Of a stretch of 64,000 nucleotides of DNA, positions 27,523-30,744 are shown in pieces. Each line of letters opens with the position of its first letter. Position 1 is the first letter of the stretch. The stretch lies in the sequence record NC_070956.1; one strand, 5' to 3'. The position numbers were made by a program, and so were the translations under genes. The notes under the pieces were generated by a model that saw only the letters and a list, made by a program, of their open reading frames with translations, did not search any database and was not told the DNA's origin.

Positions 27523-27558
27523 AAAAGCCTCTACTCTCCGGTTAGGGAGAGTAGAGGC
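27523..27558 (-). terminator. intrinsic terminator of the minus-strand RNA locus
   Basis: 13-bp stem GCCTCTACTCTCC/GGAGAGTAGAGGC with a U-tract on the minus strand. Confidence 0.82.
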
Positions 27559-27559
27559 G

Positions 27560-28330
27560 ATTACTGACGTGTACTACCTTCCCATTACTCACTCACTTCC
27601 CGATTATAGATCCGGCCAAAGACCTTATCGGGATCAAGAGAGTAATAGGCTGATAGCAAGTACGTGAGGGGTTCCAAACGGAAACCGTCACTTCTACCAA
27701 CTTCCATGCAGAGCAAGCATGGCGGACCGTTCGACTTCGTTATTAAGGTGCTCTCTGAAGTATAGTTCCCTCAGCTACCCGCCGCGGCCTCAGCCGGGGG
27801 TTTTTGCTAAGGGCATCAGCCTTATATAACGTCGTCACTGTATTGGCACTAACGAATAGAACCATCGGCGCACGGTTAAGGTACCTAAGTGACTCGCGTC
27901 CGTTGGGACGGGAGATATGACTTCCTTATAAAGGAAGAAAGGGTTTTGAACCCAGGATGCCCTGATCCATTGTAATAGACCATCGCTTCACTCCTTTCAT
28001 TAGAACCTTGCATGCCTTTCCGGCCAAAATGGTTCATCAGAGTTACTGTATATGGGAACTGTTCCGTGGGTTCAAAAAGGTATCCCGGACAATGACTAAG
28101 TAACCACACTCCACCCCATCAGCGCAAGCTAATGTAAGGTACGTCATCATCCAGGGAATAGGGCCGAGAACACGCTGTCTTTTAGAAGGATCGCTTTTGA
28201 GTGGTAAGTTCACTCATCTACTGCCAACCGACTTCCCCGTAGGGCTTCGTCTTAACTAACGTGTCTCGGTGATTCGTACTAGTATCTATCTGGTATGTTT
28301 GACACCTTGGGTATCATGGCAAACAGCCTA
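27560..28330 (-). ncRNA. candidate large structured ncRNA (~770-850 nt; possibly GOLLD/ROOL-like or a new class)
   Basis: no credible ORF; dense local and long-range helices; downstream of tRNAs; ends at a terminator; 5' end uncertain. Confidence 0.65.
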
Positions 28331-28424
28331 GGATTAACCTATGTACAAATATAGTTGAGAGTGTAAGTAAGAAACACGGTAACAGGAGGCGGAGAAACCG
28401 TATGAATACACTTACACCCTCAAA

Positions 28425-28503
28425 GGGTGAGAACTCCTGGAATCGAACCAGGGCAATCCCGCGATGGGTTGTGCGGGCGACTTTCCTTTCGTCTTCAGTT
28501 CTC
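28425..28503 (-). ncRNA. tRNA-like element / pseudo-tRNA
   Basis: 7-bp acceptor stem GAGAACT/AGTTCTC, D-loop with GG, T-arm CCTGG-TTCGATT-CCAGG; but 10-nt anticodon loop and ACCC rather than NCCA end. Confidence 0.7.
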
Positions 28504-28505
28504 GT

Positions 28506-28769
28506 TTACAGTTCGATGTCGAAAGACATCACTTCTTGTTCTTCGGTCAACTTGGTGTTAAGATCGTCAAAGCCACCAACGTGTTCATCATCCAGGAAGA
28601 TCTGGGGAACTGTTGTGACTTGTCGACCACACAATTGACTGAGTTGTGTTGTGTCGATTCCGGAAGACTTGATATCGATATATTCGAACGCGATACCTTT
28701 ATCTTCGAGAAGCTCTTTTGCCTTTACACAGTAAGGGCAATTATCCTTTCCATAAACTTTGGCTTTCAT
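28506..28769 (-). CDS. grx: glutaredoxin
   Basis: CPYC active site, TVPQIF and GGFDDL motifs. Confidence 0.93.
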   Translation of the reverse strand: MKAKVYGKDNCPYCVKAKELLEDKGIAFEYIDIKSSGIDTTQLSQLCGRQVTTVPQIFLDDEHVGGFDDLNTKLTEEQEVMSFDIEL

Positions 28770-28792
28770 GGTGTTTCTCTACGGACTTAAAA

Positions 28793-28868
28793 TGGCAGGC
28801 AAGCAAGGATTCGAACCTTGGACATCTGGTTTTGGAGACCAGCGCTCTACCAACTGAGCTACTCACCT
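28793..28868 (-). tRNA. trnW: tRNA-Trp(CCA)
   Basis: 76-nt cloverleaf, anticodon loop CT-CCA-AA, encoded CCA end. Confidence 0.95.
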
Positions 28869-29055
28869 GTAATACGAATTCACATTACTACACACTCGCC
28901 GTTCTTCCTAGTTTCCGTTCCGAACGTTCCACGGTTCACCGTCACCATATACTTTATCCATTCGGACACCATCTGTGGCTATCAAGTACTTAGGTCCATA
29001 TTGGTTATGTCTGTTGACACCCGTGTGTAAACCAGATTAATCTGGGGTGAAAATA

Positions 29056-29132
29056 TGGCAGGGATAACGGGGCTCGAACCCGCGACCTCCGGCGTGACAG
29101 GCCGGCACTCTAACCATCTGAGCTACATCCCT
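29056..29132 (-). tRNA. trnD: tRNA-Asp(GTC)
   Basis: cloverleaf, loop CT-GTC-AC, GCCA end. Confidence 0.95.
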
Positions 29133-29136
29133 AAAT

Positions 29137-29212
29137 TGGCGGTTCCTGCTGGACTTGAACCAGCGACATATGCATTAACAGTGCACCGTTCTACCTACTG
29201 AACTAAGGAACC
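29137..29212 (-). tRNA. trnN: tRNA-Asn(GTT)
   Basis: cloverleaf, loop CT-GTT-AA, GCCA end. Confidence 0.95.
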
Positions 29213-29218
29213 TGAATA

Positions 29219-29294
29219 TGGAGCCGACTAACGGAATCGAACCGATGACCTACTGATTACAAGTCAGTTGCTCTACCTACTGAGCTAAGTCGGC
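29219..29294 (-). tRNA. trnT: tRNA-Thr(TGT)
   Basis: cloverleaf, loop CT-TGT-AA, TCCA end. Confidence 0.95.
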
Positions 29295-29327
29295 GATGTC
29301 GTACCAAGGGTACGACGTACTGGACTT

Positions 29328-29528
29328 TCAACCAGCATTAAAAGAACCTAAGATCAAACCACGGACATTGCCTATGGTTCGACCAATCAAAGTGACTTCG
29401 ATGCGATCAATGGGCAAATAACCATTCGCCAGATCAATCGCTTCCGATAAGTCGACAGCTGCGATAACCACCGCGTCGTACTCGTCATAGTCCCAATCAT
29501 CGGTTCTTTCAACTTTATAGATGTTCAT
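29328..29528 (-). CDS. small hypothetical protein (66 aa)
   Basis: MNIYKVERTDDWDYDEYDAVVIAA...; GGAG RBS; similar to the product of 54663-54926. Confidence 0.7.
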   Translation of the reverse strand: MNIYKVERTDDWDYDEYDAVVIAAVDLSEAIDLANGYLPIDRIEVTLIGRTIGNVRGLILGSFNAG

Positions 29529-29598
29529 ATCGACAGTCTCCGTTGTTAGCGATTTGGCCTTCCAACGTACTACCAGCAATATCGAACATCTTGCATAA

Positions 29599-29743
29599 CA
29601 ATGAGTTTCCCAGAGTTTGACATTTTCTATCCATCATGGTCCCCGAGACCGGATTTCGGGACGCGCCGATGCTACTTCGATTCTAGACCGAAGTGTAATG
29701 GTGTTTTTTACTATTCGGGGGTTTCTGTCAAACCACTTCATTG
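29599..29743 (-). ncRNA. structured small RNA, unit 1 of a tandem pair
   Basis: CAATGAAGT...CTGGGAAACTCATTG ends; inner stem GTTTGACA/TGTCAAAC; two internal hairpins. Confidence 0.7.
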
Positions 29744-29752
29744 TTTATTTAT

Positions 29753-29891
29753 CAATGAGTTTCCCAGGGTGTAGAGTATTTTATCCGCTGCGGGCAGGCC
29801 AGGTGGGTCTTCGGGGCGCACCCACAGTTGGCTCAAGAGAGCTGCCTTGTGTTTTGGCGACTGGCCTTTATTTCTCTACACTACTTCATTG
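29753..29891 (-). ncRNA. structured small RNA, unit 2 of a tandem pair
   Basis: same conserved ends; inner stem GTGTAGAG/CTCTACAC is compensatory relative to unit 1. Confidence 0.7.
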
Positions 29892-30628
29892 AAAGGTGTT
29901 AGCTGTTTCTCTCTTGGAGCCCAGCATCGTCACCAGGATAAAACCTTTGTGTGACAACACTCAATTAACACCTATATCATTGTGACACCTTCTCGGTGTG
30001 ATACATAGTCGATCACCGCATTGGTTAGATCCCTGATGGACGACTGGACGCTGCGTATAGCAGTGTTTGTCTCCTAGGTGGGTATCGCCAGCACCGTGTC
30101 GGCTATAGGATGTGATCACACGAGGAAACCAGAGGGATGTCCAACCCTTTTCAGTTACATGTGATCACGAAAGCTGTTGTTAACAAAGTATAATAACTTG
30201 TTGTTACTAAATACTTTTCAATTGGCTCTCTTTGAAAGCTAATAGAAAAGAGGTCTTCACAAACCGTATGGAAGACCTTTGAAAAATGTAAAGGATTAAC
30301 AATGAAAAATAAACCAACCATACACGAAAGCCAACACCAATGACCTTCTATATAAACTCTCATTAAAGAGCATATATAGAAAGGGGGTAGGAAGACTACC
30401 CCGCGGGTAAAAGCAATAACCCAAGAACGTGCAGATATTGAAAGCGGGAGCTTTCTTGATAATGACTCTTGGGTGAATCAGTATTAAGAAAGCAAGGGAT
30501 AAAGCTGCGCACAAAATCCCTTTGCTTGTATTACGTAGGAGTTTATTCAATGGCTTCGTTTTGACCACTGTCGCGTTCAGTAATCAAAAGGAAGCATTTT
30601 TGTACATATAATAACAGACACCCATAAC

Positions 30629-30654
30629 TTTTCAGGTAGATATTATCTACATGA
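30629..30654 (+). promoter_or_regulatory. putative early promoter with palindrome
   Basis: TTTTCAGGTAGATATTATCTACATGA; GTAGATA-T-TATCTAC palindrome at the divergence point of the RNA locus and the early array. Confidence 0.55.
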
Positions 30655-30744
30655 GAAACCCGTTGGTATCTTAATTGTATGGTACAACTGTGTGGGATTT
30701 CCTACACTATATGATTACCTCTATCATCATAAGGAAACAGAGTT

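Follow-up and report, generated by a model that had tools for sequence, protein, structure and literature searches.

What does a phage, whose genome is normally dense in protein genes, do with about 2.5 kb of conserved structured RNA beside the tRNAs of a nucleus-forming jumbo phage? The question is raised by a minus-strand locus in a 64,000-nucleotide (nt) stretch of sequence record NC_070956.1 (the window, in whose coordinates all positions are given), which is 100% identical to Aeromonas phage LAh10 (260 kb; window position 27400 corresponds to record position 213400). In the LAh10 reference record, positions 27456-30744 (3,289 nt) are without any annotation, the tRNAs included. Ludhianavirus, the genus of LAh10, was moved to the nucleus-forming Chimalliviridae in 2025 (PMC12451628), in agreement with a first-pass annotation of the window that had assumed a nucleus-forming phage, and genes for chimallin, PhuZ and two multisubunit RNA polymerases are present in related jumbo phages of Aeromonas (PMC10673249). 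We consider it probable that the locus is an 'RNA island', conserved in the Aeromonas-infecting clade of Chimalliviridae, in which tRNAs and two small genes lie among selected, folded non-coding RNAs, and for which we propose a scheme of transcription and processing. Judged by folding and covariation, its leader modules, an approximately 190-nt spacer RNA, a non-decoding tRNA-like element and a modular large RNA are demonstrably real and belong to the minus strand. The first-pass annotation had portrayed a minus-strand, overwhelmingly non-coding locus rich in structured RNA and divergent from a plus-strand gene array, a portrait that held, and every element that it had listed for the 3-kb locus was found where it had been placed.

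The protein-coding content of the locus was assessed with a codon-usage score trained on 35 long open reading frames (ORFs) of the window, on which real genes average 0.33 per codon. Only two ORFs of at least 30 amino acids (aa) in 27456-30744 were gene-like in codon usage, while all remaining ones scored at most 0.17 per codon:

28506-28769, minus strand: glutaredoxin (grx) gene, 87 aa (PF00462 at 61.4 bits against a gathering cut-off of 22.9; phrog_22; codon score 0.34)
29328-29528, minus strand: 66-aa gene for an unassigned protein (phrog_5444, E=2.3e-11; codon score 0.28)

Protein conservation across lineages was likewise genuine only for these two genes, the 66-aa gene having tblastn homologs in two further lineages (L004 and L008), and the matches of the remaining ORFs in relatives fell over tRNA genes or antisense to real genes. 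No other tested ORF in the locus matched Pfam or PHROG. ORFs of 52-90 aa in the leader and in the large RNA were considered as genes and rejected, having negative codon scores, no family match and no conservation. By codon score and cross-lineage conservation, coding sequence comes to 465 nt, close to the approximately 470 nt claimed previously; the tRNAs take up 305 nt and the non-coding remainder about 2.5 kb.

A large part of this remainder lies at the 3' end of the locus, where the following features were recognized:

27564-28424, minus strand: large non-coding RNA region, composite (about 860 nt; no coding signal, no Rfam match)
28355-28423, minus strand: hairpin H1, a long hairpin at the 5' end of the large RNA region (inverted repeat I8, minimum free energy (MFE) fold)
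28157-28269, minus strand: module X, a long hairpin CCGAGAC...GUUCUCGG followed by a CCCUAUU tail (recurs in relatives)
27692-27736, minus strand: 3' core part 1, consisting of AACNGUCCGC, a covarying hairpin and GAAGUUG (alignment A4, model R1)
27571-27661, minus strand: 3' core part 2, a bipartite helix whose outer and inner stems are separated by the internal loop CAG-CC/GG-GAAG; the tip of the inner stem varies (MFE folds)
27527-27558, minus strand: strong intrinsic terminator (13-bp stem with 8 GC pairs, 6-nt loop, then the U tract TTTTATTATG)

The fold of 27523-28420 reached z=-5.6 on the minus strand compared to z=-2.6 on the plus strand. BLAST searches with the large RNA returned sister phages only, and syntenic loci were fetched via the neighbouring virion protein (LAh10 gp178), which gave the cultured phages AhC3_1, ZPAH34, AerS_266 and pAEv1810 and 11 uncultivated contigs (64-73% protein identity). 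All of these loci contain an ORF-free stretch of 0.45-1.1 kb that ends at a strong terminator, mostly just upstream of the gp178 homolog, and a terminator equivalent to that of LAh10 was present 3' of the large RNA in every relative examined. The hairpin of core part 1 was 100% paired among the 8 distinct sequences of alignment A4, with five of its six pairs changed on both sides, and its covariation score was reached by none of 500 shuffles. The model of this core part (R1) detected it in 16 of 16 close-relative loci (neighbouring structural protein at least 61% identical) and in none of the 24 viral loci with a gp178 homolog of about 40% identity. Scans with degenerate core patterns yielded mostly chance matches (at least 116 viral stretches and 94 bacterial ones) and were set aside; applied to candidates from these scans (80 viral and 80 bacterial loci fetched), R1 retained no bacterial locus and, among the viral ones, L068 alone, a 261-kb contig of the same clade as the 16 core-bearing loci. 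A weak R1 match inside a gene of L066 was judged to be chance.

The bipartite helix of core part 2 appeared in the MFE fold of every lineage, with 3-5 pair types per position, U-G included. Since a MAFFT alignment (A9) placed the helix arms in inconsistent registers and was unusable for column-wise pair counts, the helix was evaluated instead by folding each sequence separately and by comparing cognate with non-cognate arms. For the inner helix, its own 3' arm was the best partner of the 5' arm in seven of seven lineages (mean of -9.8 versus -2.9 kcal/mol with non-cognate arms). Overall, the covariation evidence comes from 6-7 independent lineages. Moreover, the RNA exceeded the adjacent structural gene in conservation: it was 95-99% identical within the Ferozepurvirus-like group, compared to 80-94% for the gene and 55-85% for its third codon positions, and it was 82-84% identical in the L014-L016 group and 82% identical between ZPAH34 and AerS_266, compared to 52-59% and 62%, respectively, at third codon positions. 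Because the identity of the RNA is higher than that of the third codon positions next to it, the large RNA is, as far as such comparisons can tell, either under purifying selection or recently exchanged.

Between grx and the large RNA lies a further element:

28425-28503, minus strand: tRNA-like element, the mimic (cloverleaf as MFE fold: acceptor stem of 7 bp, D and T arms, anticodon loop of 10 nt)

The mimic starts 2 nt past the grx stop codon and is directly followed by the large RNA (0 nt). It has a D arm with GG, a T arm with GGTTCGA(A/T)TCC and a 5-nt variable region, and encodes no CCA end. ARAGORN made no call on it, and RF00005 gave no match even at E<=10 (family threshold 29 bits). 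Together with its homologs in AhC3_1, ZPAH34 and AerS_266 the mimic forms 19 pairs, with 97% of the pair cells paired and six pairs changed on both sides, which bears out the cloverleaf. Its anticodon loop ranges from 7 to 11 nt across five sequences, four of which have 9-11 nt, and is without the U33/purine-37 pattern, the sole 7-nt loop (pAEv1810, ACCAUUA) having C33 and U37. A covariance model (R2) built from the four mimic sequences of LAh10, AhC3_1, ZPAH34 and AerS_266 scored 95-101 bits in Ludhianavirus, Chaoshanvirus and AhC3_1, all of them training sequences or near-identical sisters, and 54 bits (E ~1e-10) in the untrained Ferozepurvirus-like loci pAEv1810 and L158, compared to at most 24.5 bits for true tRNAs. 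With R2 the mimic was found in four phage lineages, as a single copy and always within this locus, and the order of grx followed by mimic is retained in L158. A specific mimic pattern had no match in 185,579 bacterial and archaeal species (one genome each) or in IMG/VR; the one match of a D-arm pattern scan, inside a long ORF of the GC-rich contig L009, was dismissed as chance. Taken together, these comparisons indicate that the mimic is real and non-decoding. Its acceptor stem and elbow (D and T loops) are strongly conserved and its anticodon loop varies in length and sequence, the pattern expected of an RNA that is recognized as a tRNA and unused in decoding.

Upstream of grx, the locus contains four true tRNAs, which score 66-74 bits with RF00005, and two further RNA features:

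29298-29316, minus strand: hairpin GTCGTACC-CTT-GGTACGAC, between the 66-aa gene and tRNA-Thr (z=-3.5)
29219-29294, minus strand: tRNA-Thr (UGU) (ARAGORN and Rfam)
29137-29212, minus strand: tRNA-Asn (GUU) (ARAGORN and Rfam)
29056-29132, minus strand: tRNA-Asp (GUC) (ARAGORN and Rfam)
28869-29055, minus strand: spacer RNA (S-RNA) between tRNA-Asp and tRNA-Trp, conserved and structured (187 nt)
28793-28868, minus strand: tRNA-Trp (CCA) (ARAGORN and Rfam)

The tRNAs and the GTCGTACC/GGTACGAC hairpin had been called previously together with grx and the 66-aa gene, and all are present; a 41-nt stretch containing the hairpin has a folding energy of -16.3 kcal/mol. tRNA-Thr, tRNA-Asn and tRNA-Asp are spaced by 4-6 nt. 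The spacer RNA is 68-74% identical to counterparts in ZPAH34 and AerS_266, where it lies directly 5' of the mimic, and its consensus fold comprises 46 pairs, eight of them with compensatory changes, including a long-range helix. In the sister phages D3 (L006 2734-2842) and D9 (L007 2736-2844) an additional hairpin-rich element of 102 nt is situated between tRNA-Asn and tRNA-Asp, which in LAh10 and D6 are just 4 nt apart and without this element; it may be another small structured RNA gained or lost within the genus. L068 carries odd tRNA-like genes (190-400, 798-881), including an 80-nt 'tRNA-Cys(ACA)', and at least one weak match to the tRNA model (31.5 bits at 192-278), suggesting that non-canonical tRNA-like RNAs may be common at this locus across the clade.

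The 5' part of the locus is made up of a leader and, downstream of it, a modestly structured region and two paralogous units:

30201-30605, minus strand: leader, highly structured (z=-7.97; none of 100 shuffles as good)
30450-30525, minus strand: leader module 1, a GC-rich hairpin followed by a CUUUCUUAAU...AUCAAGAAAG hairpin (inverted repeat I2)
30344-30402, minus strand: leader module 2, a GGGGTAG...CTACCCC hairpin followed by a CUUUCUAUAUA...UAUAUAGAAGG hairpin (inverted repeats, sequence)
30214-30277, minus strand: leader module 3, a GGTCTTC...GAAGACC hairpin followed by a CUUUUC...GAAAAG hairpin (sequence, MFE fold)
29895-30200, minus strand: modestly structured region including a GTGATCACA hairpin (z=-1.9)
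29737-29890, minus strand: paralogous unit U1 (direct repeat D1 at 154-nt spacing, alignment A5, z=-2.3)
29583-29736, minus strand: paralogous unit U2 (D1, A5; fold no better than shuffles, z=+0.2)

The hairpin-rich leader was confirmed at z=-8.0 and is organized as tandem two-hairpin modules, each consisting of a variable GC-rich hairpin and a hairpin with the arms CUUyyUUAAU and AUUAAGRAAG. About three modules are present in LAh10, one found by a strict search and two looser ones by reading the sequence, and 2-4 copies were present in each of five other phage leaders examined, across genera. The GC hairpin with its U-rich tract resembles a weak terminator, with the U tract subsequently sequestered. 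For the region at 29.9-30.2 kb, the structured elements claimed earlier are there, but with modest structure only, and a distant blastn search found no homolog of 29895-30200 outside Ludhianavirus. Similarly, the two RNAs that had been described as covarying are paralogous 154-nt units with conserved flanking motifs (AUGAAGU... and ...CUGGGAAACUCAUUG) and a closing stem that pairs in both through two double changes, but the comparison comprises just two sequences, of which U2 folds no better than shuffles. Both units occur in the window and, judging from 99% regional identity, in near-identical sister phages, while their motif was found in none of nine loci outside Ludhianavirus.

Candidate start signals lie at the border between the RNA locus and the plus-strand array, whose first gene begins at 30745:

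30617-30655, plus strand: candidate early-type promoter motif of the plus-strand array, holding the palindrome 30636-30650 with core GATATTATC (motif copies)
30602-30614, minus strand: candidate promoter of the RNA locus, TTATTATATGTAC, containing TATG (block conserved in 6 phages)

The palindrome had been regarded as a divergence site shared by both strands, an idea that was not supported. The motif GATATTAT(C/T), in its long form ...TTTT...GATATTATy...GTGTA, has four copies in the window (near 634, 30646, 44230 and 62505), all in plus orientation, and those examined are followed after 30-100 nt by plus-strand genes, also at sites without a divergent minus-strand unit. The palindrome core is invariant in six related phages, across genera. 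A scan for sigma-70 promoters, which gave sites no more numerous than in shuffles, was discarded; to our knowledge, host-type promoters are not used by these phages. Early promoters of jumbo phages have been described as an AT-rich, highly conserved motif of about 10 nt centred near -10 (PMC7598289; AT-rich -10 type also PMC8244752). The palindrome motif agrees with this type and is best read as a plus-strand early-type promoter, and GATATTAT is a candidate for the early (virion RNA polymerase) promoter consensus of Ludhianavirus. On the minus strand, TTATTATATGTAC would be the best candidate for the leader start; in phiKZ late promoters, TATG overlaps the start site (+1) (PMC7598289). Two other copies of TATATGTA in the window (33074 and 52376) are located between ORFs of at least 120 aa. 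Within the locus, the sole promoter-like match of LAh10 is CAACTATATTTGTACATAGG at 28353-28334 on the minus strand, just past H1, an imperfect copy of the leader's TATATGTAC block that could be an internal start for the large RNA. At the distal end, one strong terminator had been claimed and one was found, at 27527-27558 on the minus strand. On its far side, a DUF4234 gene (26997-27455, minus strand) flanks the unannotated stretch.

In relatives from several genera, the interval between the RNA terminator and the start of the gp178 homolog contains a conserved motif TTTTTGnTTGTCT...GATATTTTG (L005 ~4490-4545, L010, L008 9935-9990, L004 ~4430-4480), which is probably the structural-gene promoter; LAh10 instead has TTTTATTATGTTC and the inserted DUF4234 gene. 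In pAEv1810 (L011 2283-3335) an opposite-strand HNH homing-endonuclease gene is located between the terminator of the large RNA and the gp178 homolog, and the RNA is intact.

According to the RNA-island reading, transcription of the LAh10 locus would begin at the TATG-type promoter near 30605, at internal starts or at both, and stop at the one strong terminator (27527). The tRNAs and the mimic could then be cut by tRNA-processing enzymes of the host, with RNase P acting on the 5' side and RNase E/Z-type enzymes on the 3' side, and tRNAs, small mRNAs and stable RNAs would be set free in the manner of T4 RNAC/RNAD. The mimic, which abuts both the grx stop codon and the large RNA, might serve as a punctuation mark for this processing. 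A terminator scan of LAh10 detected no strong terminator between ~30200 and 27558, which, together with the tight spacings (4-6, 2 and 0 nt), makes co-transcription of tRNAs, grx, mimic and large RNA plausible in this phage.

Several observations count against the RNA-island reading or parts of it. The promoters, the processing sites and transcription itself are what we infer from the sequence. In the bipartite helix, the cognate arm of the outer stem was the best partner in only three of seven lineages, and alignment between genera fails for the 5' two-thirds of the large RNA, only an approximately 170-nt 3' core being demonstrably shared among the large RNAs of relatives. Module X lies between tRNA-Leu and tRNA-Asn in ZPAH34 and AerS_266 and upstream of the entire tRNA block in pAEv1810 and L158, and this mobility implies that the 860-nt 'large RNA' may be several RNAs. 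The large RNA proposed at first is structured on the minus strand as claimed, but in LAh10 it is best described as a composite region that may yield more than one RNA. R2 did not find the mimic in the IMG284k group and four Ferozepurvirus-like contigs; since these lineages keep the large RNA, the mimic is not obligatory for it. Finally, some relatives possess internal terminator-like hairpins followed by TATG motifs of the leader type. In pAEv1810 a strong hairpin with a U-run, followed by TTTATATTATGTTG, lies between the leader and module X; in ZPAH34 and AerS_266 the leader promoter core TGTATGTAAC is repeated directly before tRNA-Leu, after a hairpin and U-run; and in L068 a terminator-like hairpin and TATATTATGTAAT stand just before the large RNA. 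These pairs suggest that a single precursor is not conserved and may not hold in LAh10 either. Of the single processed operon envisaged in the first-pass annotation, the plausibility of co-transcription in LAh10 remains, but not its conservation; likewise, the comparison of locus architecture across relatives that it had called for recovered the 3' core in all 16 close loci, but also the internal terminator/promoter-like pairs and the relocation of module X.

The internal pairs in these four relatives also lend support to an arrangement of several independent transcription units in place of one operon, in which the leader would produce its own short attenuated RNAs and the tRNA block and the large RNA would have their own starts. 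This arrangement is in line with the hairpins and following U-rich tracts of the LAh10 leader modules, as well as with the tRNAs of phiKZ, which have their own transcription starts (PMC8244752), and the tRNA-Leu of 201phi2-1, which has a middle promoter and a short RNA upstream (PMC11512511). However, the gaps of 2 and 0 nt between grx, mimic and large RNA in LAh10, without a terminator between them, the spacing of 4-6 nt between tRNA-Thr, tRNA-Asn and tRNA-Asp, and the imperfect match of the only internal promoter-like sequence (28353) speak for joint transcription, and we regard independent units as possible but on the unlikely side. Compatible with either transcription model is a role of the locus in host takeover or counter-defence, the mimic or the large RNA acting, for instance, as a cytoplasmic decoy or sponge for tRNA-targeting nucleases, ribosomes or RNA-binding defence proteins. 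The conserved elbow and acceptor stem of the mimic and its free anticodon loop would suit such a role. Phage RNA is exported from the phage nucleus, which we also counted in its favour, as we did the shielding of phage DNA in this family (PMC10673249) and the report that GOLLD pulls down ribosomes (10.1101/2024.12.08.627333). However, no partner protein linked to defence is encoded in the vicinity, the pattern of conservation is also compatible with a simple processing signal, and the mimic is missing in some lineages that retain the large RNA; we consider this role rather improbable.

The position of the large RNA raises the possibility that it is a long cis-acting leader or regulator of late structural genes (gp178 homologs), with the terminator as a regulated attenuator. 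In most relatives the distance from the terminator to the gp178 homolog downstream is indeed 40-70 nt, and the two are adjacent in most of the 16 loci, but the terminator is strong (13 bp and U tract), a separate conserved motif lies between it and gp178 in relatives, and the insertion of the DUF4234 gene in LAh10 and of the opposite-strand HNH gene in pAEv1810 before gp178 has left the RNA undisturbed; we regard this explanation as very unlikely. Even less credence, close to none, is given to the view that the non-coding stretches are decayed genes or a DNA element, such as a replication origin or a packaging site near the terminase, rather than functional RNA. The large terminase gene is about 4 kb away and the region is rich in inverted repeats, as would suit a DNA element. 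In contrast, the asymmetry of folding between the strands and the compensatory U-G pairs, which are A-C mismatches on the other strand, argue for a minus-strand RNA and not a DNA element; conservation is above that of synonymous sites; and no residual protein similarity was found. A further proposal goes beyond the RNA-island reading, namely that the large RNA represents a new class of large ornate phage RNA of nucleus-forming Aeromonas jumbo phages, a cytoplasmic functional counterpart of GOLLD/ROOL. This we put forward as speculative and unlikely as matters stand. If it were true, the RNA might self-assemble into a higher-order particle or bind host translation or tRNA-targeting factors, and the mimic might be a handle for maturation or export of the large RNA.

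At about 99% identity to the window, the sister phages D3, D6 and D9 are too similar to LAh10 for covariation analysis, and N-runs or misjoins interrupt tRNA-Thr in their records. The site is split by N runs or by unrelated or duplicated sequence in D6 (L002 5813-6047), D3 (L006 2915-3220) and D9 (L007 2927-3068); the D6 insert duplicates the plus-strand gene start (window ~30720-30800), and one of the interrupted genes is labelled 'tRNA-OTHER'. These interruptions look like assembly artefacts, not introns. Aeromonas phage AP1 (L003, MT713136), filed as a T4-like member of the Straboviridae, contains a copy of the LAh10 tRNA block (L003 5001-5708) that is 98.7% identical and adjoins short fragments of genes labelled terminase and virion RNA polymerase; two phages appear to have been joined into a chimera in this record, and its match was set aside. 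Megablast and distant blastn with the non-tRNA parts returned only D3, D6 and D9 (99% identical) plus short matches to the mimic and the 66-aa gene. A distant blastn search against 50,697 phage records matched the LAh10 RNAs in Aeromonas jumbo phages only, and no homologs of the LAh10 elements were detected outside the Aeromonas phage clade.

Detectable membership of these RNAs in GOLLD, ROOL, tmRNA or YrlA is excluded. Rfam searches of window positions 27000-31000 at gathering and permissive (E<=10) thresholds found only the four tRNAs, and in five related loci (E<=1) no element matched a family besides tRNA; sub-threshold matches to plastid UTRs, miRNAs and lncRNAs were antisense to tRNAs or noise and were rejected. 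Neither the GOLLD nor the ROOL model matched the window (E<=10) or the five related loci (E<=1), tmRNA was called by neither ARAGORN nor Rfam in the window, and YrlA (RF02553) had no match on the mimic and a single sub-threshold match, in L011, over two true tRNAs. What we describe is a set of new RNA families in a known type of phage locus. The tRNA-like element, the spacer RNA, the repeated leader module and the large RNA with its defined 3' core are candidate families that extend the short list of large phage RNAs near tRNA islands (GOLLD, ROOL, T4 RNAC/RNAD), whose functions are unassigned. In addition, RNA must exit the phage nucleus to act in this phage family, which makes the locus suitable for asking how non-coding RNAs and tRNA precursors are exported and matured.

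Among known systems, the mimic resembles a canonical tRNA in its 7-bp acceptor stem, the GG of its D arm, its T-arm sequence and its 5-nt variable region, but differs in its non-canonical anticodon loop, in the missing ARAGORN and RF00005 calls and in the lack of an encoded CCA. As a tRNA-shaped, non-decoding element that abuts the grx stop codon and the large RNA, it also recalls tRNA-like elements that define the ends of adjoining RNAs. mascRNA, at the 3' end of MALAT1, is one such element, and the t-elements of plant mitochondria likewise set the ends of adjoining RNAs (PMC1920247). In contrast to these, the mimic belongs to a bacterial virus, its cleavage is a prediction, and its D loop, variable region and T arm are conserved beyond the apparent needs of a cleavage signal. 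Within the same phage family, phiKZ and 201phi2-1 are similar in that tRNAs have promoters of their own and a short RNA immediately precedes a tRNA, but the RNAs reported there are tens of nt long, and neither a large non-coding RNA nor a tRNA-like element was described (PMC8244752, PMC11512511).

With respect to layout rather than sequence, the locus parallels the tRNA cluster of phage T4, in which extra RNAs occur among or next to the tRNAs. T4 RNAC and RNAD are released from multi-gene precursors by host tRNA-processing enzymes. These small stable RNAs (species 1 and 2) have no assigned function (PMC9697503). The extra RNAs of LAh10, however, are more numerous and far larger (up to about 860 nt), they are accompanied by a repeated leader module and two protein genes, and LAh10 is a nucleus-forming phage with its own RNA polymerases, for which processing is a proposal only. 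GOLLD and ROOL, in turn, are large (500-800+ nt) structured phage RNAs without assigned function that often neighbour tRNA islands; in GOLLD, the 3' region is conserved and the 5' region variable (10.1101/2024.12.08.627333). The Aeromonas RNA has a GOLLD-like layout, with a conserved 3' core, an unalignable 5' part and tRNAs and mimic directly upstream, which is a resemblance and not membership: its sequence motifs are different, GOLLD and ROOL come from Lactobacillales, Mycobacterium, rumen and marine sources as opposed to Aeromonas jumbo phages, and the multimeric cages that they form would be speculative for the LAh10 RNA. By analogy, the closest counterparts of the locus appear to be the T4 tRNA/RNAC/RNAD cluster and GOLLD/ROOL, and in its adjacency to tRNAs, its size and its combination of conserved 3' and variable 5' parts the large RNA seems most similar to the GOLLD/ROOL kind.

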